This document shows positions 4,930 to 62,935 of a stretch of 64,000 nt of DNA, piece after piece. The stretch lies in assembly GCA_002269645.1 (NCBI GenBank), contig NIVC01000020.1:62001-126000 (forward strand). Reading direction: 5' to 3'. Position 1 is the stretch's first letter, and the number at the start of each line of letters is the position of its first letter. The stretch is from Macrostomum lignano (taxonomy: Eukaryota). Made by a program: the position numbers and the translations under genes. Under the pieces are notes generated by a model that was not told the origin of the DNA, ran no database searches, and saw only the letters and a list, made by a program, of their open reading frames with translations.

Positions 4930-5690
4930 AAATAATCAGGTAAGTCGCAAAAAGGATCAGGTAAGTCGCAAAAGAAGCAAACTAAGTCGCAAAAAGGATC
5001 AGGTAAGTTGCAAAAAGGATCAGGTAAGTCGCAAAAGGGTTAGGTAAGTCGCAAAAGGGTTAGGTAAGTCGCAAAAGGGTTAGGTAAGTCGCAAAAGGGT
5101 TAGGTAAGTCGCAAAAGGATCAGCTAAGTCGCAAAAATGATCAGGTAAGTCGCAAAAGGGTTAGGTAAGTCGCAAAAGGGTTAGGTAAGTCGCAAAAGGG
5201 TTAGGTAAGTCGCAAAAGGGTTAGGTAAGTCGCAAAAGGGTTAGGTAAGTCGCAAAAGGGTTAGGTAAGTCGCAAAAAGGATCAGGTAAGTCGCAAAAAG
5301 GATCAGGTAAGTCGCAAAAGGGTTAGGTAAGTCGCAAAAGGGTTAGGTAAGTCGCAAAAGGGTTAGGTAAGTCGCAAAAAGGATCAGGTAAGTCGCAAAA
5401 AGGATCAGGTAAGTCGCAAAAGGGTTAGGTAAGTCGCAAAAGGGTTAGGTAAGTCGCAAAAGGATCAGCTAAGTCGCAAAAAGGATTAGGTAAGTCGCAA
5501 AAAGGATTAGGTAAGTCACAAAGGGTTAGGTAAGTCGCAAAAGGATTAAGTAAGTCGCAAAAAGGATTAGGTAAGTCACAAAGGGTTAGGTAAGTCGCAA
5601 AAGGATTAGGTAAGTTGCAAAAAGGATTAAGTAAGTCGCAAAAAGGATTAAGTAAGTCGCAAAAAGGATTAGGTAAGTCGCAAAAAGAAG
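4930..5690 (+). repeat. 20-21-bp minisatellite GTAAGTCGCAAAAGGGTTAG / GTAAGTCGCAAAAAGGATCAG
   Basis: About 35 tandem copies inside the hAT-like element. Confidence 0.95.
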
Positions 5691-5969
5691 CAACTAAATC
5701 GCAATAAGAGGGAAGTAAGTCACAATCAGAGGCAATCAGGGGGTAGTAGGTGCAAGTGTGGCAGGAGAGCAAAAACAGAATAGAAGCCTTCAACCACAGA
5801 CAAGATCTTTGAAATCAGAAGCCCGCGTCAACAGTTTCCCATTGATTTCTTAAACTCTGGAGCAGGGGTTGGCAAACTCCGGCTCGCGAAGCCCCTCTAT
5901 CTGGCCCTCGCCCCTCGGGTTCTTTGAAACTTCCTAACTACGAGTAGCAAGGTTGGTGTCTCTTCAACT

Positions 5970-18117: not shown

Positions 18118-19456
18118 GTAAACTGAGTAGGTAAGCTGAGCAGATGAACTGAGTGGGTAAACTGAGTAGATAAACTGAGTAGGTAAACTGAGTAGATAAA
18201 CTGAGCAGATGAACTGAGTGGGTAAACTGAGTGGGTAAACTGAGTAGATAAACTGAGTGGGTAAACTGGGCAGGTAAACTGAGTAGATAAACTGAGCAGG
18301 TAAGCTGAGCAGGTAAACTGAGTAGGTAAGCTGAGCAGGTAAACTGAGCAGGTAAACTGGGCAGGTAAACTGAGCAGGTAAACTGAGCAGGTAAACTGAG
18401 CAGGTAAACTGAGCAGGTAAACTGAGCAGGTAAACTGAGTAGGTAAACTGGGCAGGTAAACTGAGTAGGTAAACTGGGCAGGTAAACTGAGTAGGTAAAC
18501 TGGGCAGGTAAACTGAGCAGGTAAACTGAGTAGGTAAACTGAGCAGGTAAGCTGAGCAGGTAAACTGAGTAGGTAAGCTGAGCAGGTAAACTGAGCAGGT
18601 AAACTGGGCAGGTAAACTGAGCAGGTAAACTGAGCAGGTAAACTGAGCAGGTAAACTGAGCAGGTAAACTGAGCAGGTAAACTGAGTAGGTAAACTGGGC
18701 AGGTAAACTGAGTAGGTAAACTGGGCAGGTAAACTGAGTAGGTAAACTGGGCAGGTAAACTGAGTAGGTAAACTGGGCAGGTAAACTGAGCAGGTAAACT
18801 GGGCAGGTAAACTGAGCAGGTAAACTGGGCAGGTAAACTGAGCAGGTAAACTGAGCAGGTAAACTGAGCAGGTAAACTGAGCAGGTAAACTGAGCAGGTA
18901 AACTGAGTAGGTAAACTGGGCAGGTAAACTGAGTAGGTAAACTGGGCAGGTAAACTGAGTAGGTAAACTGGGCAGGTAAACTGAGTAGGTAAACTGGGCA
19001 GGTAAACTGAGCAGGTAAACTGGGCAGGTAAACTGAGCAGGTAAACTGGGCAGGTAAACTGAGTAGGTAAACTGGGCAGGTAAACTGAGTAGGTAAACTG
19101 AGTAGGTAAACTGAGCAGGTAAACTGAGTAGGTAAACTGAGCAGGTAAACTGAGCAGGTAAACTGAGCAGGTAAACTGAGTAGGTAAACTGGGCAGGTAA
19201 ACTGAGTAGGTAAACTGGGCAGGTAAACTGAGTAGGTAAACTGGGCAGGTAAACTGAGTAGGTAAACTGGGCAGGTAAACTGAGCAGGTAAACTGGGCAG
19301 GTAAACTGAGTAGGTAAACTGGGCAGGTAAACTGAGCAGGTAAACTGGGCAGGTAAACTGAGTAGGTAAACTGAGTAGGTAAACTGGGCAGGTAAACTGA
19401 GTAGGTAAACTGAGTAGGTAAACTGAGTAGGTAAACTGAGCAGGTAAACTGAGTAG
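18118..19456 (+). repeat. 13-bp minisatellite GTAAACTG(A/G)G(C/T)AG, about 103 units
   Basis: 1339 bp equals 13 x 103. The long minus-strand ORFs are repeat artefacts. Confidence 0.97.
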
Positions 19457-20605
19457 GTGAAAGTCTGAGTCTGCGCACATGGATGCAGCCGGAATATAAA
19501 ATTTATTTGCCATGGCCACCGTATAAAAAAGTATCCAAGTATCCAAATATTAATAAACACACAGCACAGCCAACTGCAAAATATTATATGAGTTATCAAA
19601 ACAATTCAATTACGTTGAGTGCAGCGAATGAGCTGGGGGGGGGGAGTAGAAATGAGCAGCTGACAATAATTTTCACCCCAGCGATCTTAAAGCAGTAGCA
19701 CGCCCGCCCAGTCTGATGTTTTCGACTGCAAAGGGTCTGAGAAAGCAAAGCAATTAATATTTTTTCAGTTATGCGCTTCTGGTGTCCAAGCCGACTTTTC
19801 CGTATCATTATAGCTGTGATGTTGGTAAAGATGGTCGGCACCTAGCGAGACACTGCTGAGCAGGTGCCACTGTCTCACCGCATTTTCTGCCTATTTGAAT
19901 ACTGCATATTTGGGTGTCTGTCTACGGACATATGATTCGAGCTCAGCCCCTGCGGCGCCACTGACAGACAGAATGAGCCACTATTGTTCAGTTTATTGCA
20001 GGGCGTCTATTCTTTTTTTAGAGCAAAACACAATAATATGAGCTATGTAGCAGTGGCACAATTGGCTGTCTTGAAAAAAACATCAACACCAAAATGAACT
20101 TCGGGCTGCATGGCTAGCAGCGGCTCCTGGAGGGGATGAAAAAAAACGAAAACTTAGTGCAGACACAGCCAAGAAAATAAAATTCTGTGTGATAATAATG
20201 GAAGCATATATCTCGCAGACTTCAGCAGCAGTAAGGGTTAGAAGCTAAGCATATAAATGTTATTGTTAATGTGTGCACTGGCAGCCAATTTTCAGCGATT
20301 TCAGTCAACCTTGCTCGTAGTAACGTTACGAGTTGCTTAAAAAAGTGAAGAATTAACTGTACAAAAAACTGAAAGCTCACTACTGAGCACTGTGATAAAA
20401 CAGATGCAGCAGCTTTGAGCATTCCAGAGGCTTTAGCAACGCTGCTCCAACTAAACCCATTCGCAGCAATTATAAAATGAAATCCGAGTGCAAAAAGAAA
20501 AAAAAGGAAAATTTAAGTTCAATAATCAATAAAAAGTGTACGGGTAACAAAAGTACATGACGCACTCACAGAGTAGTTGTCATGAAACGAAAGTTTATCT
20601 TTTCA

Positions 20606-28867: not shown

Positions 28868-30961
28868 CCAGATTGAAGCCCGCAGCAGACCTGCCTGTTG
28901 AATGTTTAACTAAAGACAAAAACAATTTTAGCTGCTTAACCGAGCTCAGTGACGATCTAATATATCGCTAGTGTTTTTATGATATTTCGCTAGTTTTTAG
29001 GAGCTATCTTATGGAAAAAGACAATAATGCTTCTGATTTTAACGCATCACAACTATTGAACAATAATTGACGAAATCGATTTAACGCTCCATTGGTACAC
29101 TACTTAAACACTTGATTGATTATTCTATTCAGACAAAATTCCGTCAGCCACCTCTACGATTTTAAGTAATATCTCTTTAAATACACATTTTAGATCCAAA
29201 TTCACCTTATGATAATATGATAAGACGCATCATATTAGTCTTAACGAAGCCCAGATTTTCAAAGGCTTAGTCAAAATGCGATCCATCGTTTGCCTTCAGA
29301 TAGAAACGCAGCGTCCTCAGTCCTCGATAGAAATCAATAGCGAGGGATGAGGAGGAAAATCGCTCAAACTGCAGCAGCAGGAATCTCGCTTGCTGCCACA
29401 GAATGAAGCGAATAAACGTGCTGCATTGGTGGGTGCAGCCCACTGTATTTTATTGTCACTAAATAATCTTCACTCGAATAAGGTCGTAATAATCAATAAT
29501 CATAAATCAATAATTGCAACGATTGATGGAAGCTCAATGAGGAAGAATCGCAAACGGCCGAGTTTGCGTTTTTGAATCACATTCTGATCGTTTTACTCTG
29601 CGCGCAAATGATGTTTTGCCATAAGCAATCCTGTACTATTGAGCGTGCAGAGCTGTCAAGTAAAACGAAAATGCTGCTTTTGTGTGTTCTGGGTGCTATT
29701 TTGTCTTTTGTGCTTTTTAGCTCATGAATTGTCGAATTTCCAATTTTTCCGAGTTTTCATTTTTATAATCTTGAAGTTTTCCAGAGAAGGACTGCAGATT
29801 TTGCTATTAAGTGCAAATAACATTGATCGCAATGTCACTTCACGGTAATGACCTCTGATTAATGAACGGTCATTATGGGTAAGAAAATTCAATCAATTCT
29901 TAACCTTCCATTTGTACTTCGTTATAATCAACGCATCACTGATTTCATTTCAAGTCATCGTAGATCTCTCACTCTGGATTAGTTATGTACAAGAGTGACT
30001 TGCTTCACACCTTTGCTACGCTAAATGAATTAAAAACTTAACCACACGCTGCTATCTGACTGTTACCTGCCCATTCAGGTTAGTTGTGTGCGGTAAGGCT
30101 GCAGGAATATTTTTAGTAGCTACGAGCTAGCACAATCCACCGAGAAAGTCCATTCTCAGAGCCTCTGGGTGTGCTTAAGTTTGTTAAGTACGAGCGACAA
30201 GCGTACAATGTGAAAGCGAAGTTCTCTTTCTAGTGTACATTTAGAAACCGCATATTCGTACAATATCTCAGAATTCTGTCATTGCGCCTGTTTTGTGTAG
30301 TTTGCTTCCATTTTCACTTACCTACCCGATAGTTGCACTCAGCGGCTCTCCAGATCTGTCTTATCAGAGACGCCGTCGTGTGATGCCAGGGTTGCATGCC
30401 AGATGTAGTGGCTTTCGTAAGTGAGTGTAAAGTTGTAGGCATTTTATACAGACAAGACTGACACACGTGACTAGAAATGAACTAAATTACAGCTGAGATC
30501 ATAAAATTTGAAAAAAAGAAAGCAGACAAATGAGCAAATCTGAGTTAGCTACAGAGCTACCGCAAAATTTAAAAGATTTGGCTGAAATATATGTAAGCTC
30601 ATAGCTAGAAAAGCCAGGAGAATGAAAGCAAAAACGAACATTAGCTTTGATTACAACGGTTTTAATATTACTTTTAATATTTAGAATACATTAATATACT
30701 CGATTTTCTGGTTGTGAGTACCCCAAGTCTGACCCGAACAGACCTTAGTACTCGTACGAGTATGCGTGGGCAAGCTGAATAAATGACCGGATAAGCTATA
30801 TATTAACTAAGTTACATTAAGGATTAACTAAGTCACACTACTATAAGTTAAGCTTTGTAGAAAGTATCAAAGTACAATAAGCATTGTTTTCTGCAACTAA
30901 GCTGGCCACAGAGAAGTTCAGAATCTTTCACTTTATTAAGCCATTGTTGTAGCCGGCTCAA

Positions 30962-32218
30962 TCATTTGTCTTTGCCTTCCTCGTCGTTGTCGGAGTCGCA
31001 GTCGCAGTCGCAGACGCTGAGAATTTGAACCAAAAGTGCATCGAAGAATGCTTTCTTAGTCGCGTCATCGAGCGGAACCGGAGCGCCATTGATCTCGTCA
31101 GTCACGACGTCTCCCATCGGGATGTGTTGCCCAACTTTCTTGCAGTTGCCGCAACGCGCCACGGCACGAAACTGTTGGCCGTCATACTCGATGGTGATCA
31201 TTCTGCTGGGAGCAGCACGCGGGTTGCCCCGGGCTTTGTGGAATTCATGCAGCGCGTGCTGCTCCGCGCAGCTCGGCTCACCTCCAGCCGAACCGCGGAC
31301 TTTAGGCGCTCCGTTCGGGAACTTTTCGTTCAGCATCCGCTGTGTGGTTGCTTCCTCGCCTTGGAAGGGATCCAGGCGCTGTGCCTTCCGAAGGCGGAAG
31401 GAATAGCCGGTGTATGCGGTACCTTCCACATCGATTACCATGGCGCACTTGGTTCCTTTGAGGCCTTCGGGGCCAGATTTTACAGCTTCCTTCATCTGTA
31501 GAGCGACATGCTGGATTTCTCGGACAATGACATCTACCGATTCTGCGCCCGCCAGTTCGAGTTTTCCCTGGCGAACTGCCTCGACGATTTCACTCTTCAT
31601 CTGTGCGTACGCAGCTCTTTTCGCTGTGAAATTCTCTACGGCCTTTGCACCGCGGTAACCTGCCACACCATCAAAAACAAACGTCACCACCCAGTCGAAG
31701 CCTTCTCCAGCTGACATTTTACTGTTGCGGAGTTGGTCTACTGCATGAAAGTGTCCGTACAGCCGCTTTTCGTTATGAAGAGCCGAATCAACTGCAGATA
31801 TGATCCCATCCATTGCTGCTCCCCCAGCAACTCCTCCGGCAACGGCTCCCGCGGGACCACAGGCAGCACAGCCAGCAATCCCACCTCCGAGAACGCCCAC
31901 TGAACGCGAGGCCGCCTTCATGGCTTTGTCACCGCCCTCTCTGTCACCGAATGCGTAATGGCCGGCACCTTTCACGTGGCCGAGAACTGGAACTGCATCG
32001 GCAAAGTCGGAAACTCCCTGAAGAAAGTAGAGTTGGGACTCTTTAGCAAATTCAGAATTACCGCTAGCAAGAGCGACAGTTGCCACAACCTGCGATACAA
32101 CAGGGCAACCCTTGACAAAGTTTTTTTGTGTTTGCTTGGCACCTTCGGTGTCGCCAGCAATCAGCTGGACCGCACTTTTTGTTTGGGAGATTACCGGCAG
32201 GCTGTCTGTATTTCCCAT
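30962..32218 (-). CDS. Intronless 418-aa protein: myristoylation signal, helical hairpin repeats, glycine zipper, and a C-terminal zinc-dependent nucleic-acid deaminase-fold domain (CAE...CxxC, YwqJ-like)
   Basis: MGNTDS start. Repeats PVISQ / PVVSQ / PVLGH. GVLGGGIAG...GPAGAVAGGVAGGAAMDG. Deaminase-like AYTGYS...SCAEQHAL...ARCGNC...MGDVVTD. Confidence 0.8.
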   Translation of the reverse strand: MGNTDSLPVISQTKSAVQLIAGDTEGAKQTQKNFVKGCPVVSQVVATVALASGNSEFAKESQLYFLQGVSDFADAVPVLGHVKGAGHYAFGDREGGDKAMKAASRSVGVLGGGIAGCAACGPAGAVAGGVAGGAAMDGIISAVDSALHNEKRLYGHFHAVDQLRNSKMSAGEGFDWVVTFVFDGVAGYRGAKAVENFTAKRAAYAQMKSEIVEAVRQGKLELAGAESVDVIVREIQHVALQMKEAVKSGPEGLKGTKCAMVIDVEGTAYTGYSFRLRKAQRLDPFQGEEATTQRMLNEKFPNGAPKVRGSAGGEPSCAEQHALHEFHKARGNPRAAPSRMITIEYDGQQFRAVARCGNCKKVGQHIPMGDVVTDEINGAPVPLDDATKKAFFDALLVQILSVCDCDCDSDNDEEGKDK

Positions 32219-33164
32219 TGTTACTCTTTATACGTTTGCCGGCTTCATCAGTGATAGCAATTTAAATCCGTCTGGAAAAATGGGGAGGTTTTTAGTAGAA
32301 GGCGCAACTTTTTAGTACAGCTCAAATTATGTTTCAATTAAAAATTATCTTAAAAATAGATAAAATCTTACCTTGCTCTAAGAAATTCTGATTCAGATTA
32401 TGGAGGGTGAGGACGGCTGTCTACATCTTTGAGTTAGTCTATATATAAAGAGACACTTGGTGTACAATCTTGCCACTATTATGCACGTAATAGGCAGCCA
32501 CCTCACCTTTGCTACTTGAAAAAAATTCGAGGCTCGTGCTTTGTACGTCTGTACTAGCTCCAGTGCGATTTTCAGTACTAGCTCCAGTGCGATTTTCAGT
32601 ACTAGCTCCAGTGCGATTTTCAGCATCTTTTGAGCATGGATATTAGCCACTCTCATACTACTCATAGCACGGATGACGAAAGTGAAAAAGCGTAGTACAG
32701 AGGCCGTCTACTCGAGTACATGTAGATCCCAGCTTTTCAGCAAGACACCAAAAGTACCAATAAAGCTTAGACAATAGCAGACTAGTTTGCTTTTTGTAGC
32801 TTATTTTGTACGATTACTTGCCTATGAACCACAAAGTCACAAACTTTATTCATTCATAGCTTGCTGATTGTCAGGCATCGGAGCACATTCGGTACAATGA
32901 CAACTAGGAACACTTCGTTATAGAGTCTAGTAGTCTAGTCTAGTAGTCCTTGATTCGGTGATGCAGATTTCTACATTTGCGACAGTGAGTAGGCAGCCCA
33001 GCCCTCTCGTGACTTAGCAATTTCAACCAATGCTCTCCTTCTGGTAATTTTTATACTATTGTTAGTAGCCTGGCCTTCACCATTCGCTTGGTCTACGACT
33101 AAGGACCGCTAAAATTTATCTGCGTGACAACCGACTGACAACAACTTGTGTCAGCCCTGGCTGT

Positions 33165-36197: not shown

Positions 36198-38351
36198 ATG
36201 CCGGACCTGACAAAGCCTGGCCGTCGAGAGCTGCTGCTCAGCCGGCTGCGGCAGCTGCTTGGCAGCTCCACAGCTCACGGCGTGAACAAGCTGGTGCAGC
36301 AAGACACCAACTGGACGGTGCGCGTGATCTGGTTCACGATCTTTGTCAGCGCCGTCTGCGGGGTGACGCTGCACACGGCCACCGTCATTCGCCTGTACTT
36401 CAGCTACCCCGTCAGCTCCACGGTGCGCCAGGAGGTCAACGGATTCGAGTTCCCGGACGTCACCATCTGCGACACCATGCTGAAGAAGTTCTTCCTGTAC
36501 AATGTGTCCCACTATGACCGGCGCACTGAGGACCGCGCCTTCAGCCGCTTCTCCCAGGTGGTGCAGACGATGTTGGGCTACCAGTTCGGCTGGGAGTCCA
36601 AGAAGTTCCTGAAGGCCACCTACACGGCCTCCGGCCACATGTTCAACATGTCTGAGGTCAGCGCCAGGGCACAGGACTTTGTGCTGTACTGCGAGTTCGA
36701 CCAGAAGCCGTGCAGTCACAAAGACTTCGTCCTGTACTACGACAAAGAGTACGGCAACTGCTACACCTTCCAGCCGGCGTCCAGGCAGCTGGAGAAGGCG
36801 GGAGCAGAGATGGGTCTCATCATGGTACTGTACCCGCCCTCAGTCGATGCGAACTTCGAGGAGGACCGCATCATGAAGACGGCCACAGGCCTGGAGAGCA
36901 AAGGCTTCCAGGTGACGGTTCATCAGCGCAACACGCGGCCGGACCCGCACGAGTTCGGCATCACCGCCCCGGTCGGCATGCGCACCGACTTCGCGCTGTC
37001 GCAGGCGAAGATCCGCCTGGCCAACACGAACACGCGGCCCTGCGCCCCGGCCGGCGTGCGCCGCTTCTGGAACCCCTTCCTCCGCCTCCACCAGGAGTAC
37101 GAGGACCGCCTCTACAGCTGCGTGGAGAATGAGGACGCGCTGAGCCTGCTCAGAACCTGCCGCTGCACCATCGAAGGCCTGATACCAGCGGAGGAAAAAC
37201 GCCTGCTGCAGGCGGATTACTGCCACGACATCCTCGACATGCGGAACTTCAACAGCAGCCGCTTTGCCAGAGTCTCCAACCTGGTGCTCAACATGTGGCG
37301 CATCTTCTCCGAGGAGCGCAAGAGGAAGTACGCAGCCCTCATCGTCAAGGTGATCGGCGCCAAGATCATCGAGAAGTTTCCCGATCTCGGCGAGCGGCTC
37401 AACCGGGCTGAGTGCGCTTACAACTTCTCGCAGAAGCAGAGCCTCTCTCTGTGCCTGAACGAGTGCCAGTACAGCGAGTACTCGTCCGCCATTGCGCTGG
37501 CCGAATGGCCGGACCGAACTTTCGCCAGCCGAGGCAGCCTCATCCGCATCAAGAAGCTGGGCAGCATGCTCGCCGACTACATCTCTGTGGTGGCGAACCT
37601 GACGCCGCCTGCAGCTCTGGTCACTTCGCTGGGCATCTCCAATCGAAACGTGTCTAGCTGCCGGGAGGACATCCACCCCAACTACGACCCCGCGGCGCTG
37701 GAGGACACTGACTGCACGGACCTGCAGCGGTTCGTCAGCAACACGCTGGTGCAGGTGAGGGTCTACCCCAAGACGCTCACCGTGCGCCTGCTGATTGAGG
37801 AGCGGAGCTACGAGCTCGAGAAGCTCTTCTCAGACATTGGCGGCATCCTCGGCCTGTGGGTCGGCATCAGCGTCATCACCATCTTCGAGCTGGCGGAGAT
37901 CGCAGTGCTGTCTGCTGCCTTCCTCTACAACCTTATCAACAAGCCCGGCGGCGCCAGCGGCCAGCAGCAGCCGCCAAACTCGTCACCCACTCGCCGGGTC
38001 GATGAGGCACTCGAGGCTTCAGAACCGCCTCAGCGGCTGCTGCAGCGGCGAAGGCAGCGGCTTGACCCGCGAGATCAGGCCGAGTCACCGCCGCTGCTGC
38101 CACATCAAAATGGCAGCCTTCTTCGGCATCAGCAGCAGCAGCAGCAACAGCTTCAGCCACAGAAGCAACTACATCAAGAGCAAAGCCAGCAACAAGAACA
38201 ACTGCTGCCGCAGAGGCAACAAGCAGAGCAAGAACAGCAGAAGAAAAAGCAGCAGGACAGCCAAGAGCAATCGCAGCAGCAACGGCGTCACGTGATGTTG
38301 CAGCAGCGGAAGGACATCTGTTTAAACTACGATATTGAGACAACGCTGTGA
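36198..38351 (+). CDS. Intronless DEG/ENaC/ASIC-family sodium channel subunit (717 aa) with a Gln-rich C-terminal tail
   Basis: STAHGV (HG motif), TM1 VIWFTIFVSAVCGV, FPDVTIC, YGNCYTF, Cys-rich thumb, TM2 LFSDIGGILGLWVGISVITIFEL. Confidence 0.95.
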   Translation: MPDLTKPGRRELLLSRLRQLLGSSTAHGVNKLVQQDTNWTVRVIWFTIFVSAVCGVTLHTATVIRLYFSYPVSSTVRQEVNGFEFPDVTICDTMLKKFFLYNVSHYDRRTEDRAFSRFSQVVQTMLGYQFGWESKKFLKATYTASGHMFNMSEVSARAQDFVLYCEFDQKPCSHKDFVLYYDKEYGNCYTFQPASRQLEKAGAEMGLIMVLYPPSVDANFEEDRIMKTATGLESKGFQVTVHQRNTRPDPHEFGITAPVGMRTDFALSQAKIRLANTNTRPCAPAGVRRFWNPFLRLHQEYEDRLYSCVENEDALSLLRTCRCTIEGLIPAEEKRLLQADYCHDILDMRNFNSSRFARVSNLVLNMWRIFSEERKRKYAALIVKVIGAKIIEKFPDLGERLNRAECAYNFSQKQSLSLCLNECQYSEYSSAIALAEWPDRTFASRGSLIRIKKLGSMLADYISVVANLTPPAALVTSLGISNRNVSSCREDIHPNYDPAALEDTDCTDLQRFVSNTLVQVRVYPKTLTVRLLIEERSYELEKLFSDIGGILGLWVGISVITIFELAEIAVLSAAFLYNLINKPGGASGQQQPPNSSPTRRVDEALEASEPPQRLLQRRRQRLDPRDQAESPPLLPHQNGSLLRHQQQQQQQLQPQKQLHQEQSQQQEQLLPQRQQAEQEQQKKKQQDSQEQSQQQRRHVMLQQRKDICLNYDIETTL

Positions 38352-39470: not shown

Positions 39471-40876
39471 TAATCAGATTTCAGTAGAAGTTTTGTATCT
39501 CTACAGCGAACAAATCGAATTGCAAGTTCCAGCCTCCATGACGCATCTATTAAACACTCCGCATAGCAAATCTTGTGGAGCTCTCAAAGTGCATTTTGAG
39601 CTTTGATCACGGCTGCGAGAGCAGACGCTGAGGCTCTGAGTATTTTTGCAGTTTCCCTCCCGTGGCTGTCTGTTGTTTATTCGCCTGCTAATGCTTTGAT
39701 AATGCTTTGATCATCTGACTCCCGCTATCCACTGGGACTGTTGAGTCGCCTGAGTTTCCGCGCATTCTTTCCACTATGGCTGATATTCACCTGTGCACTC
39801 CGAATTGGTAAATATACTGGGAGGCTGACCGATGCCCCTCGAACCGGTGAAGCCAGCGCTGTCTTGCCTTTCATTTTGCTGGTTAGTGATTGAGTGAGCA
39901 ATGCGGCATTAAGTAAGCAGGCCGGGGCCTCAATTATAGAGTTCGGTAGGCGTCTTGATAGTATACACATTCTTATTTAAAAACTGGAGACGGCATGCTG
40001 AAGACAGTATGAGTGCGTTCCTGCGCACGGTATTGGCCCTCTTGTATGGGTTCAGGAGTCACCGGTTCTGGGATCCTCCTGTCAGTACTTACTTTTGTAA
40101 TAAATGTAGGCAGTCCAAAGAGATCGTTGTTAAAGGCCAACAGTATTTGCAATGGCCGATGCTACAAGTTCTGCAGATTAGTCTAGTCACAGATTAGCAA
40201 GGATTTGCGCTGGCCGATGCTACAAGTTCTGCAGTTTAGTCTAGTCACATATTAGCAAGGATTTGCGCTAGCTTTGGCCTCCGTGGCACTAAGTTATTTT
40301 GGAGAGAAGACAGCGCCTTGCAAGGTTGTCTGTCAGGCAGCAGCTGGATGGGATCCTGCTCTGCTAAGCCGGAGTCGAATAGCAGTTTGCATTGCGGCTG
40401 AGCCCCACAGTTCCGCAGCAGATCGCTAACAGGATTAACTGCATGCACAGGCCAGTTAGCTCGTGTGCCAGTAGCCTTAGAAAGCATATGAGAGCAGACA
40501 GACCCAACCGCCGAGTGCTGCGAACAGACAGACTGTTTGAGCTTCAAATCTTCGACATTCTCTTGGGCCGAATCGCAAGTGGCAGCTGAGTTCAGATCGC
40601 TTTCGAACGGCGGTCTTTAAAGCGGATTTCGCTGAGAATCACACGGAACTCAGGCTTAGGAATGTCCTCCCTTCCTGAGATGGTCGAGAAAAGAGCTGAG
40701 CCTGACCAGAGCCTGTGGAGAGGGCTGCAGCCTGTAAAAAGCATCCTTTATCAGCGATGAAGCAACCTAAAAGGTCTGCATTTTTGTGGGGTTGATGCAG
40801 AATCTCGTCTCAAAGGTATTCTGAAAGTTCGAACCAGAGCAACGCAGATCAAATGTTACAGCTGGGCCTGAACGCT

Positions 40877-41894
40877 AAGCGCCTGCTGCAAGAGCCCATT
40901 GTACACACGAAGCGCCTGCTGCAAGAGCCCATTGTACACACGAAGCGCCTGCTGCAAGAGCCCATTGTACACACGAAGCGCCTGCTGCAAGAGCCCATTG
41001 TACACGCGAAGCGCCTGCTGCAAGAGCCCATTGTACACACGAAGCGCCTGCTGCAAGAGCCCATTGTACACACGAAGCGCCTGCTGCAAGAGCCCATTGT
41101 ACACGCGAAGCGCCTGCTGCAAGAGCCCATTGTACACACGAAGCGCCTGCTGCAAGAGCCCATTGTACACGCGAAGCGCCTGCTGCAAGAGCCCATTGTA
41201 CACACGAAGCGCCTGCTGCAAGAGCCCATTGTACACGCGAAGCGCCTGCTGCAAGAGCCCATTGTACACACGAAGCGCCTGCTGCAAGAGCCCATTGTAC
41301 ACGCGAAGCGCCTGCTGCAAGAGCCCATTGTACACACGAAGCGCCTGCTGCAAGAGCCCATTGTACACGCGAAGCGCCTGCTGCAAGAGCCCATTGTACA
41401 CGCGAAGCGCCTGCTGCAAGAGCCCATTGTACACGCGAAGCGCCTGCTGCAAGAGCCCATTGTACACACGAAGCGCCTGCTGCAAGAGCCCATTGTACAA
41501 GCGAAGCGCCTGCTGCAAGAGCCCATTGTACACACGAAGCGCCTGCTGCAAGAGCCCATTGTACACGCGAAGCGCCTGCTGCAAGAGCCCATTGTACACA
41601 CGAAGCGCCTGCTGCAAGAGCCCATTGTACAAGCGAAGCGACTGCTGCAAGAGCCCATTGTACACACGAAGCGCCTGCTGCAAGAGCCCATTGTACACGC
41701 GAAGCGCCTGCTGCAAGAGCCCATTGTACACACGAAGCGCCTGCTGCAAGAGCCCATTGTACACGCGAAGCGCCTGCTGCAAGAGCCCATTGTACACACG
41801 AAGCGCCTGCTGCAAGAGCCCATTGTACACGCGAAGCGCCTGCTGCAAGAGCCCATTGTACACGCGAAGCGCCTGCTGCAAGAGCCCATTGTAC
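40877..41894. repeat. 33-bp near-perfect minisatellite aagcgcctgctgcaagagcccattgtacac(a/g)cg, about 31 units
   Basis: Direct inspection. Two alternating variants. Confidence 0.97.
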
Positions 41895-42209
41895 TCGTTC
41901 GGGCCAAACAGCCGCCCCCAATGCAAATCCGCCGGTGGGCTGGGGCGGTCACGCACCGCTCTCTGCCAGCTCTACAGATCTGTCTGCGGTGGAGTGAGAG
42001 AGCTCTTAATTAAAAATCCCGGGAGCTGGAGTCATTTCTGCTGCAATAGGTCTTGGAGTCAGGAAAGCAAAGCAATTTCTGTGTTTTGGAAGGAGAGACG
42101 GACCAGAGGGCCGGAATGTTCCTGAGCTGAAATTATTTGTGCTTTGGCGTGCAAGTATGCGGCTCGTGCTATCTACATGTATCACCCTGTCCTCAGATCT
42201 AAGCAAATC

Positions 42210-43290
42210 CTCCGAATATAGACAAGCCTCCAAATCTAGACACCCCTCCGAATCTAGACACCCCTCCGAATCTAGACACTCCTCCTAATCTAGACACCCC
42301 TCCTAATCTAGACACCCCTCCTAATCTAGACACCCCTCCGAATCTAGACACCCCTCCTAATCTAGACACCCCTCCGAATCTAGACACCCCTCCGAATCTA
42401 GACACCCCTCCGAATCTAGACACCCCTCCGAATCTAGACACCCCTCCTAATCTAGACACCCCTCCTAATCTAGACACCCCTCCGAATCTAGACACCCCTC
42501 CTAATCTAGACACCCCTCCTAATCTAGACACCCCTCCTAATCTAGACACCCCTCCTAATCTAGACACCCCTCCAAATCTAGACACCCCTCCGAATCTAGA
42601 CACCCCTCCTAATCTAGACACCCCTCCTAATCTAGACACCCCTCCTAATCTAGACACCCCTCCGAATCTAGACACCCCTCCTAATCTAGACACCCCTCCT
42701 AATCTAGACACCCCTCCTAATCTAGACACCCCTCCGAATCTAGACACCCCTCCGAATCTAGACACCCCTCCTAATCTAGACACCCCTCCTAATCTAGACA
42801 CCCCTCCGAATCTAGACACCCCTCCGAATGTAGACAACCCTCCGAATCTAGACACCCTCTGAATCTGGACACCCCTCCAAATCTAGACACCCCTCCGAAT
42901 CTAGACACCCTCCAAATCTAGACACCCTCCGAATCTAGACACCCTCCGAATCTAGACACCCTCCGAATCTAGACACCCTCCGAAGCTAGACAATCCCTCC
43001 AAATCTATAGACACCCCTCCGAATCTAAACACCTCTCCAAATCTAGACACCCCTCCGAGTCTAGACACCCCTCCTAATCTAGACACCCTCCAAATCTAGA
43101 CACCCTCCGAATCTAGACACCCTCCGAATCTAGACACCCTCCGAATCTAGACACCCTCCGAAGCTAGACAATCCCTCCAAATCTATAGACACCCCTCCGA
43201 ATCTAAACACCTCTCCAAATCTAGACACCCCTCCGAGTCTAAACACCTCTCCAAATCTATAGACACCCCTCCGAAGCTAGACACCCCTTT
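42210..43290. repeat. 17-18-bp minisatellite aatctagacacccctcc(g/t)
   Basis: About 60 copies, degenerating at the right end. Confidence 0.95.
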
Positions 43291-44122: not shown

Positions 44123-44574
44123 AAAGACAGCTGGTATTTTATTCAAACCCAGCTTATGCAGATGTAATAAAACTTGTCTATAAATAGTGCCGTCCTCGCA
44201 CTGGGCCGCGGTTCAGACTGCGTGTGATGCTGCGGAATGCGACGCCACAGACAGTTTGTCACCGCGATGCCCTTAAGCGTCATCACAGGGCCGGACCGGA
44301 TTGCAGCTGCGACTGCAGGCCCAGACACACAAGGATAAAAAAGTTTTCTTAAAGCGGCATTACCGCCCAGGCGATCCCAGGCGCTCAGAAGCCGCCGGCC
44401 GTAATTTAGATTTCGAATTTGATTAGGCCGCCGCTGCTGCCAGTGCATTCGGCAAATATTAAACTGGCTTTGGCGTTCGCTGCGCACTAAGAGCGACTTT
44501 GGCCTCCGTAAAACTCAAAATGAACTTTAAGAGCCATTGTGCAACGCTGATTTTCCCTGTCAAAGACTGAGCCC

Positions 44575-45590
44575 TGTACCAGAAACCCTATCCCTGAACC
44601 AGAAACCCTATCCCTGAACCAGAAACCCTATCCCTGAACCAGAAACCCTAGCCCTGAACCAGAAACCCTATCCCTGAACCAGAAACCCTATCCCTGAACC
44701 AGAAACCCTATCCCTGAACCAGAAACCCTAGCCTTGAACCAGAAACCCTAGCATTGAACCAGAAACCCTAGCCCTGAACCAGAAACCCTAGCCCTGAACC
44801 AGAAACCCTAGCCCTGAACCAGAAACCCTAGCCCTGAACCAGAAACCCTAGCCTTGAACCAGAAACCCTATCCCTGAACCAGAAACCCTAGCCCTGAACC
44901 AGAAACCTCAGGCCTGAACCAGAAACCTCAGCCCTGAACCAGAAACCTCAGGCCTGAACCAGAAACCCTAGCCCTGAACCAGTAACTTCAGCCCTGAACC
45001 AGAAACCCTAGCCCTGAACCAGAAACCTCAGGCCTGAACCAGAAACCTCAGGCCTGAACCAGAAACCCTAGCCCTGAACCAGAAACCTCAGGCCTAAACC
45101 AGAAACCCCAGCCCTGAACCAGAAACCCTAGCTTTGAACCGGAAACATCAGGCCTGAACCAGATACCCTAAGCCCCTGAACCAGAAACCCTATCCCTGAA
45201 CCAGAAACCCTATCCCTGAACCAGAAACCCTAGCTCTGAACCAGAAACCTAAGGCCTGAACCAGAAACCCCAGGCCTAAACCAGAAACCCTAGCCCTGAA
45301 CCAGTAACCTCAGCCCTGATCCAGAAACCCTAGCCCTGAACCAGAAACCTCAGCCCTGAACCAGAAACCTCAGGCCTGAACCAGTAACCTCAGCCCTGAA
45401 CCAGAAACCCTAGCCCTGAACCAGAAACCTCAGCCCTGAACCAGAAACCTCAGGCCTAAACCAGAAACCCTAGCCCTGAACCAGAAACCCTATCCCTGAA
45501 CCAGAAACCCTATCCCTGAACCAGAAACCCTAGCCCTGAACCAGAAACCTAAGGCCTGAACCAGAAACCCCAGGCCTAAACCAGAAACCT
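44575..45590. repeat. 20-bp minisatellite gaaccagaaaccctagccct
   Basis: About 50 copies with variants. Confidence 0.95.
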
Positions 45591-47062: not shown

Positions 47063-47521
47063 CTTAAAGCTGACGGTGCGGGTGGTGACGCAGATGGCGG
47101 ACACCGCGGTGTGGAACACGCGGCCCAGCGCGGCCTGCACATCCGGCCTGTTGTGGTAGTCTATCTGGCTCACCAGCTCCTGCTGGCTGGCGCCCCGGCG
47201 GCCGCAGAACTTGGCGGTGGCGTGCAGCAGCGGCGGCGCGGGCGACTGAGGCGGAGACGCGGACCGCTGCTTGCGAGACTTGGACCTCCGGCCTGAGGAA
47301 GCTGGCACTGGAGGCTCCGCGGTGGCGACCCCGGCGGGCAGCTGCGGCAACGGCTCCGGTGCGCCTGTGGAGGAGGAGGCCAGGCAGTCGAGGAAGTCGC
47401 GGGCCAGGCGGAACAGGCGGGCAGCATCGGCGGACTGCAGGAACCAGGCGTAGTAGGTGGGGTGCGCCGCCTCCCAGCTGGACAGCCGCTGCTCGATGAT
47501 CTCGAGGGGCACCGAGTGCAG
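47063..47521 (-). CDS. CNP: CNPase exon 2
   Basis: LHSVPLEII...PTYYAWFL...LHATAKFCG (first HxT; compare LHCTTKFC)...AVSAICVTTRT. 459 nt, phase 0 at both ends, canonical AG and GT. Confidence 0.88.
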
Positions 47522-47557
47522 CTGCGGGGTAGGATAAGAAAATAGAGGCTAGATGAT

Positions 47558-48006
47558 TCCCAGCTACTCATAGTAGTATGCGGTCCGCAGCTCCCGGCAA
47601 ATCCCCAGCTACTCATAGTAGTATGCAGTCCGCAGCTCCCGGCAAATCCCCAGCTACTCATAGTAGTATGCGGTCCGCAGCTCCCGGCAAATCCCCAGCT
47701 ACTCATAGTAGTATGCGGTCCGCAGCTCCCGGCAAATCCCCAGCTACTCATAGTAGTATGCGGTCCGCAGCTCCCGGCAAATCCCCAGCTACTCATAGTA
47801 GTATGCGGTCCGCAGCTCCCGGCAAATCCCCAGCTACTCATAGTAGTATGCGGTCCGCAGCTCCCGGCAAATCCCCAGCTACTCATAGTAGTATGCGGTC
47901 CGCAGCTCCCGGCAAATCCCCAGCTACTCATAGTAGTATGCGGTCCGCAGCTCCCGGCAAATCCCCAGCTACTCATAGTAGTATGCGGTCCGCAGCTCCC
48001 GGCAAC
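47558..48006. repeat. 45-bp minisatellite filling a CNP intron (47522-48010)
   Basis: Unit cagctactcatagtagtatgcggtccgcagctcccggcaaatccc, 10 near-identical copies abutting the donor site. Confidence 0.95.
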
Positions 48007-48010
48007 CAAC

Positions 48011-48664
48011 CGTGCGATTGGCGAGCTGCTGAGCGTCGAAGCGCCAGGGAGTCTTGGGCACAACCAGCAGCAGCACGTAGCCGAAGCGGGTGGCCAGGTC
48101 GACGTAGAACTGGAACTCCCAGCGGCGCACATTAGTGTTGTCCACAATCACTGGCGACTTGCCGCAGCTCATGGCCTCGTAGGCCCGGTTGTTGCAGGCC
48201 TCGTGGGCGTCCTTCAGCCTGTCAGCGTCGAACTGGAAGGCGCCGCTGGCCGGGTCGATGAAGAAGAGGTCGGCAGAGCAGACGGTGCTGCCGGGGTACA
48301 GCTGGCAGAGCAGGCGGGTGAGGGTGGACTTGCCGGAGCCGGGCAGGCCGCGCATGAGGAACAGGACCCGGTTGGCGCGCAGCCAGGCCAGGCTGGCCTC
48401 CTCCGCGGTGAAGGGGAAGGCGGCGTGGGCCAGCAGGCGGGCGCCGCTGCTGGGCACCAGCGACTCCGACTCGGTGGAGCCGACGGCCTCGCCAGCGGCG
48501 CTGCCGTTGACAGGCGCGGCCTCGGAGCCGGGGGTGGCGGCCGAATCAGAGACGTCGTCAACTGCTACGACCAGCCGGGAGCCGAAGTCGAAGGCGCCAT
48601 CGTTGCCGGGGCAGTCGGCCTCGCCGCGGAGGCAGCGCTTGCAGGCGCTGTTGCTGTTGCCCAT
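48011..48664 (-). CDS. CNP: CNPase exon 1 (P-loop polynucleotide-kinase-like domain)
   Basis: MGNSNSAC start; LMRGLPGSGKST, VCSAD, IVDNTN..WE, PKTPW. Donor ACG|GTTGG at 48010. Possible 5'UTR exon ending at 50826 (G|GTGAG) spliced to the acceptor at 48688. Confidence 0.88.
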
Positions 48665-59535: not shown

Positions 59536-61114
59536 AAAACAACAACAGAATACGCAGTTAGCGTCACAGGGCGCGCTTCAAGGCCAGGTCGCGAATGAAC
59601 GCCACGCCGTCAGCCGAATCCGGGGCGCCGGCGTCAGCCAGCAGGCAGTCGACGAAACGCCGAGTGCGCGCCTGCTCCCGCCGGTAGGGTGCCTGCAGCG
59701 TTAGCAACAGCACCTCCTGCACAGGCTCTGGGCAGTACGACTCGGCGCGGATGATGTGGCCTGCCAGCTGGAGTCGCCGACGGCGTAACAGGTCGCTGGA
59801 CGGATTAGGCCGGCGCGGCGATACAAAGCCGCGTTGGTCACTCGCTCGTAGCCGATCTTGAAGGCGGCGCGCAGCAGGCCAGCGTGCGCCGCGTCAACTT
59901 GCTGCTCGAGCGACTCCGTCAGCGTCGATGTCTCGGCGTTGTACAGCAGGACGGTCTCGATCACCGCCTGGAACAACGCCGCCCTCTGGCCTCGGACTGC
60001 AGGACTGCCCTCACGGCTCACAGAACAAAAGGCAGCCCAGGCAAGCCCGTGGCGACGCCGCAAATCATCGCGGAAGATGGGAACCAGACCGTCGAGGTAG
60101 ACGAACTGCTGACAACGCGGAAGCTCTGTCGCCTGTCCATCAGCGCCTCGGCACAAAATCGCTGCCTCGATGTCGTCCGGCACGCAGAGCGTGTTGACCA
60201 CCAGGCCGACACTCGCCGCAACAGCAACTGGCTTGTCCAGTTGTCGCTGGGCGCCCTCGACAGTTGAGGAACAGCAGGGCGAGGTCGTCGACGTAGCAAA
60301 GCACGCTGAGCCGCCTCTCCGGTTGACGTCGACCCACGTGTCGCCGCAACAGAAAGCCGTCGTCGCTGGTAGGAAGAGCGGTCCGCAACACCCAGTCAAG
60401 CACGAGAACAAACAAAAACGGCGCAAGCGTATCCCCCTGAAGCACCCCGGAGGATGTCTCAAAGAAGTCCGATAGGCCGTCCGGTGTTAAAACAGCAGCT
60501 TTCGTATCATGCAGTACATCACCATGATGGCGGAAATCAGCTGCTCTGGCACGTTGTATGCACGGAGCACCTTTGGGAGTAACAGACCTGACGACCGAGT
60601 CGAATGCCTTTATGAAATCTATGAAGTTAACAATCAGGATCGACTGGCGTATCCGTGCTTCCTCGATGACTCGCCGAAGAGCCAGGATCTGCGTCACTGT
60701 GCCGCGATGGGGCCGGAAGCCGTTCTGCTCAGGATGCAGGTACGGATCCAGCACGGGCTGCAACCGCGATAACAGCATCCGATTGAACAGCTTCGCAGCG
60801 CAGGGCTGAAGGCAGATGCCTCGATGCTCCTCAAGCCTCGTGGTGCCCGGCTTCTTAGGAACTGCGACGATGTGCGCCGTGGTCCATTCGTTGGGTGCCT
60901 CCTCACCAGAGAGCACGCGATTCATCACTCTGGCGACCTCACTGGCCACACAGTGGATGCGCAGCGCCTCGATGGGCACCTCGTCCGGACCCAGCGCTTT
61001 CCCGCCCGGTGACTGTTGGGGGAGCCTCACAACATCGGCTATGCTGACTGGTGCTAGGCTGAAGCTCTCCTCTGCCGGCAACGGCATCTCCGGCGGCAGC
61101 CTCAGACTGTCTGA
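59536..61114 (-). mobile_element. 5'-truncated RTE-like non-LTR retrotransposon with a frameshifted RT
   Basis: KALGPD, EQNGFRPHR, FIDFIKAFDSV, GVLQGDTLAPFLF, YVDD. gttgtt tail. 9-bp TSD GGGTACTCA at 59527-59535 and 61115-61123. Confidence 0.93.
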
Positions 61115-61749: not shown

Positions 61750-62259
61750 TCCAGGACGCGAGACTTTAGTGGAGAATTCGCGGTGACTCATTACATGCAA
61801 GTGGCTCACGATTTCCAAAGTAGACACGAATTACATGGACTTGTACATGTACATATCAGTCTGTCTATTAGCGCTAGACTTTCCCCCAAGCCGAAACCCT
61901 TACTAACGCAGGTGACTTCTCTAGCAGCTTATAATTTTGTTAATATATACCCCAAGCATGGCCGGACTTTAGACTATTGCTGGACTTATGTTTGTAAAGC
62001 TGCAGTATGAAATATCTAAATATGTTTCTAAAGCTGCAGTATGAAATATATACTCTACTATATCTTCTCTATAATTGAATACACTGTGCCGCATGCCGAG
62101 GGAAAGCCGCCAAGGCCGGCCGTAACTCCCCCCAATCGATCCCACAAAATTAATCCTCAAAACCGAGCTCCTCCAAAAATAAATCAAAGATGTAACCAAA
62201 CTCGACGAGTGAAAGGAGCTCAGCTTTCACCTCCGCTTGGACGTGGCGTAGACCGGCCT

Positions 62260-62935
62260 AGGAGACAGGGTTTGGGGCGCCCACCCAGGAGACAGGGTTT
62301 GGGGCGCCCACCCAGGAGACAGGGTTTGGGGCGCCCACCCAGGAGACAGGGTTTGGGGCGCCCACCCAGGAGACAGGGTTTGGGGCGCCCACCCAGGAGA
62401 CAGGGTTTGGGGCGCCCACCAAGGAGACAGGGTTAGGGGCGCCCCGCTAGGAGACAGGGTTAGGGGGCGCCCACCTAGGAGACAGGGTTAGGGGGCGCTC
62501 ACCTAGGAGACAGGGTTAGGGGGCGCTCACCTAGGAGACAGGGTTAGGGGGCGCTCACCTAGGAGACAGGGTTAGGGGGCGCTCACCTAGGAGACAGGGT
62601 TAGGGGGCGCTCACCTAGGAGACAGGGTTAGGGGCGCCCCGCTAGGAGACAGGGTTAGGGGGCGCCCACCTAGGAGACAGGGTTAGGGGGCGCTCCACGA
62701 TACAGGGTTAGGGGGCGCCCACCTAGGAGACAGGGTTAGGGGGCGCTCACCTAGGAGACAGGGTTAGGGGGCGCTCACCTAGGAGACAGGGTTAGGGGGC
62801 GCTCACCTAGGAGACAGGGTTAGGGGGCGCTCACCTAGGAGACAGGGTTAGGGGGGCGCTCACGTAGGAGACAGGGTTAGGGGGGCGCTCACGTAGGAGA
62901 CAGGGTTAGGGGGGCGCTCACGTAGGAGATAGGGT
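62260..62935. repeat. 27-29-bp G-rich minisatellite ggagacagggttagggggcgctcaccta
   Basis: About 24 copies in two or three variant blocks. Confidence 0.95.

Follow-up and report, generated by a model that had tools for sequence, protein, structure and literature searches.

A single-exon gene on the minus strand of a 64,000-nucleotide stretch of the Macrostomum lignano genome (hereafter the window; all coordinates are its own) encodes a 418-residue protein in which a domain with the predicted fold and active site of a zinc deaminase follows an N-terminal module that recurs in many other eukaryotic proteins. We are confident that the gene is real and that it encodes a zinc-deaminase fold whose active site is intact, preceded by a conserved eukaryotic N-terminal module. 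The reading of the whole that we favour, with a probability of roughly 0.55, is that of a cytosolic, N-myristoylated, membrane-associated protein whose deaminase, of a new clade, would serve as the warhead of a eukaryotic polymorphic effector family and act on a nucleic-acid base or a nucleotide.

In the open reading frame (ORF) listing of the window, the single-exon coding sequence (CDS; 30962..32218, minus strand, as for all features of the gene given below) is complete, running uninterrupted from an ATG start through 418 codons to a TGA stop. A first-pass annotation, made from the letters of the window, had described an intronless ORF with a myristoylation consensus, three helical hairpins, a glycine zipper and CxE and CxxC motifs, and had read it as a toxin-like, membrane-targeted deaminase. 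All the motifs that it listed are present, on the minus strand, which it had not stated.

The deaminase domain and its clade

The deaminase domain, residues 220-395 (31034..31561), was characterized with AlphaFold2 (AF2) models, Foldseek and hhalign. A domain-only AF2 model built on alignment A3, which holds 22 sequences of the domain at 18-55% identity to the query, gave a mean predicted local distance difference test (pLDDT) of 87.7 and a predicted template modelling score of 0.83; the full-length model (17-sequence alignment) gave a pLDDT of 80-90 across residues ~220-385. The top 50 Foldseek matches of the domain model in the PDB were all homotetrameric-type cytidine deaminases (CDAs) or blasticidin-S deaminases. 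Fifteen matches reached E≤1e-3, the best at 1.4e-4; probability was ~1.0 across the matches, and target-normalised template modelling scores were at most 0.64. The full-length model yielded the same picture in the fold search, and a search of the viral library BFVD returned weak matches, the named top ones being CMP/dCMP-type deaminases.

The AF2 domain model contains a three-layer α/β/α core in the order β1-β2-α2-β3-α3-β4-β5, preceded by α1, with CAE on α2 and CxxC on α3. An insert of ~45 residues, with conserved positions G271, R277 and P301, lies between β2 and α2, and an extra β-hairpin (domain residues 127-135) lies between β3 and the Arg-Cys pair. There is no helix 4; after helix 3, DSSP assigns only short β elements and a turn of 3 residues. 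The conspicuous motifs are YTGYS at residues 268-272, CAEQHAL at 317-323 and RCGNC at 355-359. On the strength of their invariance and of their register with PDB 1jtk, C317-A318-E319 (31262..31270) is predicted to supply the first zinc ligand and the catalytic Glu at the start of helix 2, and R355-C356-G357-N358-C359 (31142..31156) the second and third zinc ligands at the start of helix 3. In the model, C317 and E319 precede or open helix 99-111 (domain numbering), C356 stands just before helix 138-144, and C359 falls in the first turn of the latter. Across the 22 domains, C317, E319, A322, R355, C356, C359, G369 and D374 are invariant and A318 is kept in at least 90%; CAE occurs in 20 of them, with CSE and CGE once each. 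Two of these invariant residues, G369 and D374, belong to MGDVVTD (residues 368-374; 31097..31117), a clade-specific motif of the β4-β5 hairpin in which M368 and V371 are nearly invariant as well.

The register was checked against the Bacillus subtilis CDA, the sequence of which was verified as identical to 1jtk. Alignment of A3 with a 1jtk/2d30 alignment by hhalign paired CAE with Cys53-Ala54-Glu55 and RCxNC with Cys86 and Cys89, albeit with a weak score (P=0.0023, probability 13%). Sub-threshold Pfam matches also covered the catalytic core in two members, one to PF00383 (17.4 bits) and one to PF14431 (14 bits). Judged by model and alignment, the domain has a zinc-deaminase fold in which the catalytic and zinc signature is conserved and intact, and we infer that it is active: residues ~220-395 would form a zinc-dependent hydrolytic deaminase in which C317, C356 and C359 bind zinc and E319 acts as the proton shuttle. 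The deaminase fold proposed in the first-pass annotation is borne out by these results, as is the conservation of the catalytic C, E, C and C in homologs, on which that proposal had been made to depend. Separately, one metagenomic homolog with both the N-terminal module and the deaminase (P0105) has lost CAE (…SICNVYQ…) while retaining CxxC-like residues, and is a possible pseudo-enzyme.

The earlier assignment of the domain to the YwqJ-like clade had taken CxE plus CxxC as the signature of that clade. This was imprecise, since the combination is typical of the entire C-terminal-hairpin division, ordinary CDA included (Iyer 2011, PMC3239186). In that division, strands 4 and 5 pair as an antiparallel hairpin and are not separated by a helix 4 (PMC3239186); the M. 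lignano domain has no helix between β4 and β5, and its best fold matches, the CDAs and blasticidin-S deaminases, belong there. The synapomorphies of the YwqJ clade include a Gx[CH]xE signature, a conserved His of the insert, and an insert before CxxC (PMC3239186). The extra β-hairpin between strand 3 and CxxC agrees with the last of these. Across the 22 domains, the residue two before the Cys is P, S, R, N, Q, T or another, with no conserved Gly, and the ~45-residue insert carries no conserved His. The PF14431 hidden Markov model did not match the query at E≤10, and matched one of the 22 members at 14 bits (E 0.057) against a cut-off of 25.9 bits. With two of three synapomorphies failing and the Pfam score below threshold, membership of the YwqJ clade was rejected.

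The CDD/CDA clade is marked by C[H]AE in helix 2, PCxxCR in helix 3 and a Glu at the end of strand 5 (PMC3239186). The M. lignano domain has the first of these traits. The canonical Pro of PCxxC is replaced by Arg (R355), which is invariant before the first Cys in RCxNC, with no conserved Arg after the motif; the Glu after strand 5 is not conserved, and D374 is invariant instead. Neither PF00383 nor PF08211 matched the query, and one of the 22 members reached 17.4 bits with PF00383, against a cut-off of 25 bits. Placement outside the AID/APOBEC and ADAR families, as proposed in the first-pass annotation, was upheld: the domain carries CxE in place of HxE and lacks helix 4, and no AID/APOBEC-like protein was among the top fold or Pfam matches. 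[quoted passage not shown] The fold and its chemistry are known already; the clade is new.

With the CDD/CDA and blasticidin-S deaminases (1jtk, 4f3w, 1wn6, 2z3g), the M. lignano domain shares the fold, the strand and helix order, the absence of helix 4, and a Cys-Cys-Cys zinc site in which CAE belongs to helix 2 and CxxC to helix 3, at 12-16% identity and with PF00383 below threshold. It differs from them in the invariant RCxNC in place of PCxxCR, in the clade-specific MGxVxTD and in the 195-residue module in front, and its substrate is probably not a free nucleoside. With the YwqJ-like toxin deaminases (PF14431; PMC3239186) it shares the division, in which CxE is allowed, and inserts at the same two positions (strand 2-helix 2 and strand 3-CxxC), and both are C-terminal in modular proteins with swappable cargo; unlike those toxins, the M. 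lignano protein has no LXG, WXG, RHS or PT domains and no immunity gene, and is so far found in eukaryotes only. The AID/APOBEC-like and the secreted SNAD/NAD deaminases (Krishnan et al. 2018, PMC5889660) are also zinc deaminases of animals, patchily distributed and thought to derive from conflict systems, but the M. lignano protein differs from them in its CxE, its RCxNC and its lack of helix 4, and none of them appeared among the top matches.

The likeness to CDAs bears on a different reading, namely that the protein is a housekeeping or metabolic deaminase of small molecules (a nucleoside, a nucleotide or a blasticidin-like xenobiotic), anchored to an organelle by a glycine zipper like that of C19orf12 and with no role in conflict. 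We regard this as unlikely. All the closest solved folds, those of free-nucleoside CDAs and blasticidin-S deaminases, share its Cys3 zinc site, and a G-x-N/S motif after strand 2 resembles the 'GxNxEN' of CDA, visible in the 1jtk sequence. However, the CDA synapomorphies at RCxNC and after strand 5 are missing, and the pocket is capped by the ~45-residue insert, as in toxin clades. Further evidence on this reading comes from the N-terminal module and its partners, described below.

The N-terminal module, its family and its cargoes

Residues 1-195 (31634..32218) are the constant module of the family (hereafter the N-module); nearly all of the 914 family representatives described below match residues ~1-200 only. 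The N-module begins with three repeats, each modelled as a helical hairpin in the full-length AF2 structure. Repeat 1 (residues 7-37; 32108..32200; PVISQ..GDTEGA..TQ..F) comprises helices 8-20 and 24-37, and Repeat 2 (residues 38-75; 31994..32107; PVVSQ..G(D/N)..A..(T/S)Q..F) helices 39-51 and 55-74. Repeat 3 (residues 76-105; 31904..31993), which reads PVLGHVKGAGHYAFGDREGGDKAMKAASRS, is the most conserved stretch of the module, with a helix at 77-89 and the next from 93. Each helix-turn-helix unit is headed by one short motif: PVISQ at residues 8-12, PVVSQ at 39-43 and PVLGH at 77-81. In alignment A5 (22 sequences of the N-module at 39-65% identity), 20 columns are invariant, among them P77, G80, H81, K83, G84 and H87 of Repeat 3. 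The family consensus shows the internal triplication as PVxSQxKSxVQxxxGDxEGAxxTQxxF twice, then PVVGHxKGxxHYAxGDxEGGDxAMKAASR, and continues with GGxxGFxVGGPxGAxAGGxxGGxAMD and a conserved FD...DG..G tail. Scans with the query and with an N-module profile found no match to the N-module in Pfam, NCBIfam or PDB sequences; more broadly, the full protein, the deaminase profile and the N-module profile drew nothing significant in Pfam, NCBIfam and PADLOC scans or in phmmer/hmmsearch against PDB sequences. From its conservation and its model, the N-module is a eukaryote-specific helical module made of three helix-turn-helix repeats and a Gly/Ala glycine-zipper hairpin.

An exhaustive phmmer search of 1.84 billion representatives recovered 914 proteins at E≤1e-3, each standing for a cluster at 50% identity, and 131 at E≤1e-30. 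Almost all match residues ~1-195 only, and BLAST of the query against its homologs likewise showed that most share this segment alone. Full-length homologs are 50-59% identical in Rotaria and 35-41% identical in oyster, mussel and fish. The named members come from a flatworm, bdelloid rotifers, oyster, mussel, a sponge and a fish; from nematodes, springtails, a mirid bug, a moth, krill and prawns; and from algal transcriptomes of the MMETSP, with one glomeromycete record. The metagenomic contigs that bear homologs look eukaryotic. The N-module also occurs by itself, in proteins of ~190-330 aa, and C-terminal to RING or U-box domains. As judged by these sequence matches, it defines a large unannotated eukaryotic family in animals and algae.

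Among 137 representatives, the C-termini behind the N-module form at least 61 clusters of unrelated sequence. Their Pfam matches include a Scabin-like ADP-ribosyltransferase (ART), Endonuclea_NS_2 (a non-specific nuclease), LRAT, Lipase_3, GH18 with Chitin_bind_1, and Ig domains, and the module also has partners that are not toxin-like (RING, U-box, VPS9 and KH). One homolog (P0129) carries the present deaminase followed by two Ig I-set domains. This arrangement follows the logic of bacterial polymorphic toxin systems, in which a constant N-terminal module is joined to recombining C-terminal enzymes (deaminase, ART, nuclease, lipase, glycosidase; Zhang et al. 2012, PMC3482391), and it sustains the toxin-like or effector-like character given to the protein in the first-pass annotation. 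Unlike those systems, the M. lignano family is eukaryotic, with no secretion-system leader and no adjacent immunity gene: three loci showed no conserved neighbour, and no known leader or pre-toxin domain was found. The N-module is unrelated to the known trafficking and pre-toxin domains of polymorphic toxins, and it also stands alone or behind RING. For the small-molecule reading, the RING, VPS9 and KH partners are in its favour, whereas the patchy phyletic distribution and highly polymorphic cargo are atypical of housekeeping enzymes, and the sibling cargoes include DNA-targeting ART and nuclease domains.

Two recurrent cargo families on the same N-module have no Pfam annotation (P0022/P0024/P0047, and P0038 with P0042-P0045). 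One of them ends in ...FGQHD..GF...YD..EF.PNT.AID; the other ends in ...EIITAF and has a weak match to PBECR1, a BECR-fold RNase toxin (E=0.02). Both are candidate new effector domains. In Sinanodonta woodiana, two paralogous genes with the N-module and deaminase (P0016 and P0017) lie on one 112.7-Mb contig with locus tags 65 apart, which points to local duplication of the deaminase-bearing form.

We searched for relatives outside eukaryotes. No relative of either module was confirmed in 185,579 prokaryotic species genomes (GTDB, one per species) with alignments A5 and A7, and the A5 scan of IMG/VR viral contigs gave pattern matches with no confirmed relative; these scans rest on short conserved peptides and tblastn at E≤1e-3 and would not pick up distant relatives. 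A deaminase-alignment search of a 5.8-billion-protein set added two further members, both linked to the N-module, and no other architecture; the search was word-indexed, scored 1615 candidates and did not recover its own source proteins, so that its negative carries little weight. All members of the deaminase clade that were found carry the N-module, and the literature yielded no paper on the locus, the deaminase clade or the N-module. Within the reach of these searches, we found no description of the modular eukaryotic family.

These results also bear on the origin proposed in the first-pass annotation, a YwqJ-clade tip inherited from a bacterial polymorphic toxin together with a PT-TG-like pre-toxin or translocation N-terminus, which we now consider very improbable. 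The single PF14431 match is in the correct register, and the combination of a constant N-terminus with a variable C-terminus is that of polymorphic toxins. Yet that match lies below its cut-off and the other 21 members have none, neither the Gx[CH]xE nor a conserved His in the insert is present, and PF14449 (PT-TG) matched neither the query (E≤10) nor any of 133 scanned relatives (42 members at E≤0.01 and 91 at E≤0.001). Within the limited sensitivity of the scans, neither module was found in the prokaryotic genomes or in IMG/VR, and the deaminase clade was found only behind a eukaryotic N-module.

Myristoylation consensus, glycine zipper and tail

The protein begins with MGNTDSL (32198..32218), an N-myristoylation consensus (G2, S6) that fits the PROSITE pattern MG{EDRKHPFYW}xx[STAGCN]{P}, in agreement with the G2/S6 consensus noted earlier. 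The closest homologs keep MGN[TV][DN]S. Across the family, 76 of 192 members start with MG, 59 of them with S at position 6, and others begin with MD(W/A)xP and are not myristoylatable.

The glycine-zipper hairpin (residues 106-138; 31805..31903), recognised by composition and in A5, consists of two GxxxG arms around G121-P122. The uncharged Gly/Ala stretch spans 31 residues (106-136), with GxxxG spacing on either side of G121-P122; residues 105-147 include 12 Gly and 11 Ala, and G121 is invariant in A5. We rejected a reading of this segment as a type-II signal anchor: its best 19-mer has a predicted insertion free energy of about +5.3 kcal/mol, against -2.9 for a glycophorin A control (scale values after Hessa et al. 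2005), and no translocon-type transmembrane helix is present. A signal-anchor topology is accordingly unlikely, and the simplest arrangement would be cytosolic synthesis with peripheral or post-translational membrane association.

C19orf12 is a membrane protein of mitochondria, the endoplasmic reticulum (ER) and mitochondria-associated membranes (PMC4470416). Both it (PF20721) and the N-module have the hairpin pattern G(D/E)xxMKAA...GGxVGGPxGxAxGGxxGG; C19orf12 is without the three PVxSQ repeats and without enzymatic cargo. Weak PF20721 matches fell on the glycine-zipper segment in three members, the best at 17 bits against a cut-off of 30. Alignment of the segment with the verified human C19orf12 by hhalign gave P=5e-5 and a score of 34.9, compared with P=1.6e-4 for a reversed C19orf12 control and 14.4±4 for shuffles of the segment. 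The reversed control being nearly equal, we claim a shared motif and not homology, and the C19orf12 lead was downgraded to motif-level likeness by these controls. The zipper's similarity to that of an ER and mitochondrial protein counts for a small-molecule deaminase anchored to an organelle, and its match by the reversed control counts against one.

The same segment is central to another reading, in which the N-module is itself membrane-active, with the glycine zipper as pore or translocator, as in glycine-zipper bacteriocins and the LXG effector TelE, and the protein is an exported toxin that, by some unconventional route, delivers its cargo outside the producer or into prey, competitors or pathogens. 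We think this quite unlikely. Stand-alone N-modules are common, which implies an activity of their own; MccV, Bacteriocin_IIc and RTX-N gave weak matches to glycine-zipper segments; and cargoes such as GH18 with hevein-type chitin-binding domains, Ig domains and lipase are typical of extracellular attack proteins. In addition, TelE needs a glycine zipper for its toxicity (PMC10434224). Against export, the protein has no signal peptide, the Gly segment is no translocon-type transmembrane helix, and no secretion or processing site was identified; the bacteriocin matches are of low complexity and far under threshold. N-myristoylation, moreover, marks cytosolic proteins.

The C-terminal tail of the protein is acidic and Cys-rich (residues 396-418, ending ...VCDCDCDSDNDEEGKDK; 30965..31033) and disordered in the model, with a pLDDT <50 over residues 385-418. 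Its CDCD core is common to the rotifer-like homologs P0002-P0010 (xCDCDNPH...) and is not found in the mollusc and fish homologs. The tail could be a palmitoylation or metal site.

The locus and the proposed role of the protein

The exact protein was located on scaffold NIVC01000020.1 of M. lignano assembly GCA_002269645.1. A second copy of the locus with collinear flanks lies on NIVC01001366.1 of the same assembly and encodes a protein 98% identical. The ORF is intact in both copies, and the two CDSs are 99.1% identical, with 11 substitutions (4 synonymous and 7 non-synonymous codon differences) and no indels. The flanks are 97-99% identical yet indel-rich, most of all in the first 500 bp upstream, which contain 76 gap positions. 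The genome of M. lignano is duplicated or partly polyploid, and two collinear copies in one assembly are consistent with this.

Around the CDS, an in-frame TAA (32228-32230) lies 12 nt, or four codons, 5' of the ATG, and TTTTTCCAG (32272..32280), ~54 nt 5' of the ATG, reads as a possible splice or trans-splice acceptor. An AATAAA (30932..30937) ~25 nt 3' of the TGA stop may serve as a polyadenylation-type signal. Further upstream, a unit of ~24 nt (aaaatcgcactggagctagtactg) is present in three tandem copies within 32540-32640 on the minus strand, ~330-420 nt 5' of the ATG, and may be promoter-proximal. The deaminase ORF is 4 kb from a bona fide animal gene, an intact, single-exon ORF of 717 aa for a DEG/ENaC channel (36198-38351, plus strand) with a full-length Pfam match to ASC, the amiloride-sensitive Na+ channel (E=1.9e-60). 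A reverse-transcriptase ORF at 60140-61087 (minus strand; RVT_1 match, E=2e-17) is probably a retroelement fragment. The window is very densely populated by minisatellites, whose units of 15-45 bp recur up to 60 times (for example at 657-1297, 4938-5708, 18118-19458, 40877-41894, 42209-43288, 44570-45589 and 62257-62935). They account for most of its other long ORFs in all frames, including those with spurious DBINO and collagen Pfam matches at 40853-42013 and 47170-48147. An Rfam scan of the window gave no matches. The window is otherwise typical animal DNA, as the first-pass annotation had supposed.

This setting bears on whether the ORF is functional at all. It could have arisen by chance or by contamination, be the decaying remains of a horizontal transfer, or encode a catalytically dead domain resembling a zinc ribbon; this possibility is largely refuted, and we attach almost no weight to it. 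The gene is known here from genomic sequence alone, the minisatellites of the window do create spurious long ORFs, and P0105 shows that CAE can be lost. The deaminase ORF, however, is not repeat-derived, the catalytic residues are invariant across the 22 aligned domains, and intact copies are found on two M. lignano scaffolds, amid flanks of the M. lignano type and with an animal ion-channel gene adjacent. The 914 cluster representatives at E≤1e-3 and the invariance of the motif residues across homologs place the ORF beyond chance. It is a real, conserved gene; contamination and a chance ORF are excluded.

Under the reading that we favour, the protein would be made in the cytosol, N-myristoylated, and held on the cytosolic face of a membrane, where the glycine zipper may provide additional membrane contact or oligomerisation. 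It would most likely be a conflict or immune effector that deaminates a nucleic-acid base (or nucleotide) at the membrane surface; the effector role is suggested because the same N-module carries many other enzymatic cargoes in other eukaryotes. Several observations weigh against this proposal. The closest solved structures are those of enzymes that take free nucleosides or an antibiotic, not nucleic acids, as substrate, and sequence homology to known deaminases is marginal, with the hhalign probability noted above and no match of the 22-sequence profile to PDB sequences. Myristoylation is not family-wide, given the number of members that start with MG, and the partners that are not toxin-like, together with the stand-alone form, mean that the N-module could be a general membrane or organelle anchor. 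Proteins with GH18 and hevein-type chitin-binding domains are normally extracellular, and such a cargo fits a purely cytosolic model poorly. The three loci compared also showed no conserved neighbouring gene resembling an immunity gene.

A broader proposal, which we advance as a tentative possibility, is that the family constitutes an undescribed, eukaryote-wide polymorphic effector system, in which a lipid-anchorable glycine-zipper carrier would bring swappable warheads to membranes, for example those of pathogen-containing compartments or of target cells. The warhead here would then be a new clade of nucleic-acid (DNA or RNA) cytosine deaminases, independent in origin of AID/APOBEC, of ADAR and of the known bacterial toxin clades. 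If the domain acts on polynucleotides, the few known sources of nucleic-acid editors and mutators would gain a compact (~170 aa) lineage of Cys3-zinc deaminases, and such activity, if true, would be relevant to the evolution of innate immunity and to base-editor discovery; M. lignano itself is tractable to transgenesis. Whatever the substrate, residues 1-195 identify a large un-annotated family, the modular cargo of which points to an unrecognised effector or conflict system of eukaryotes.

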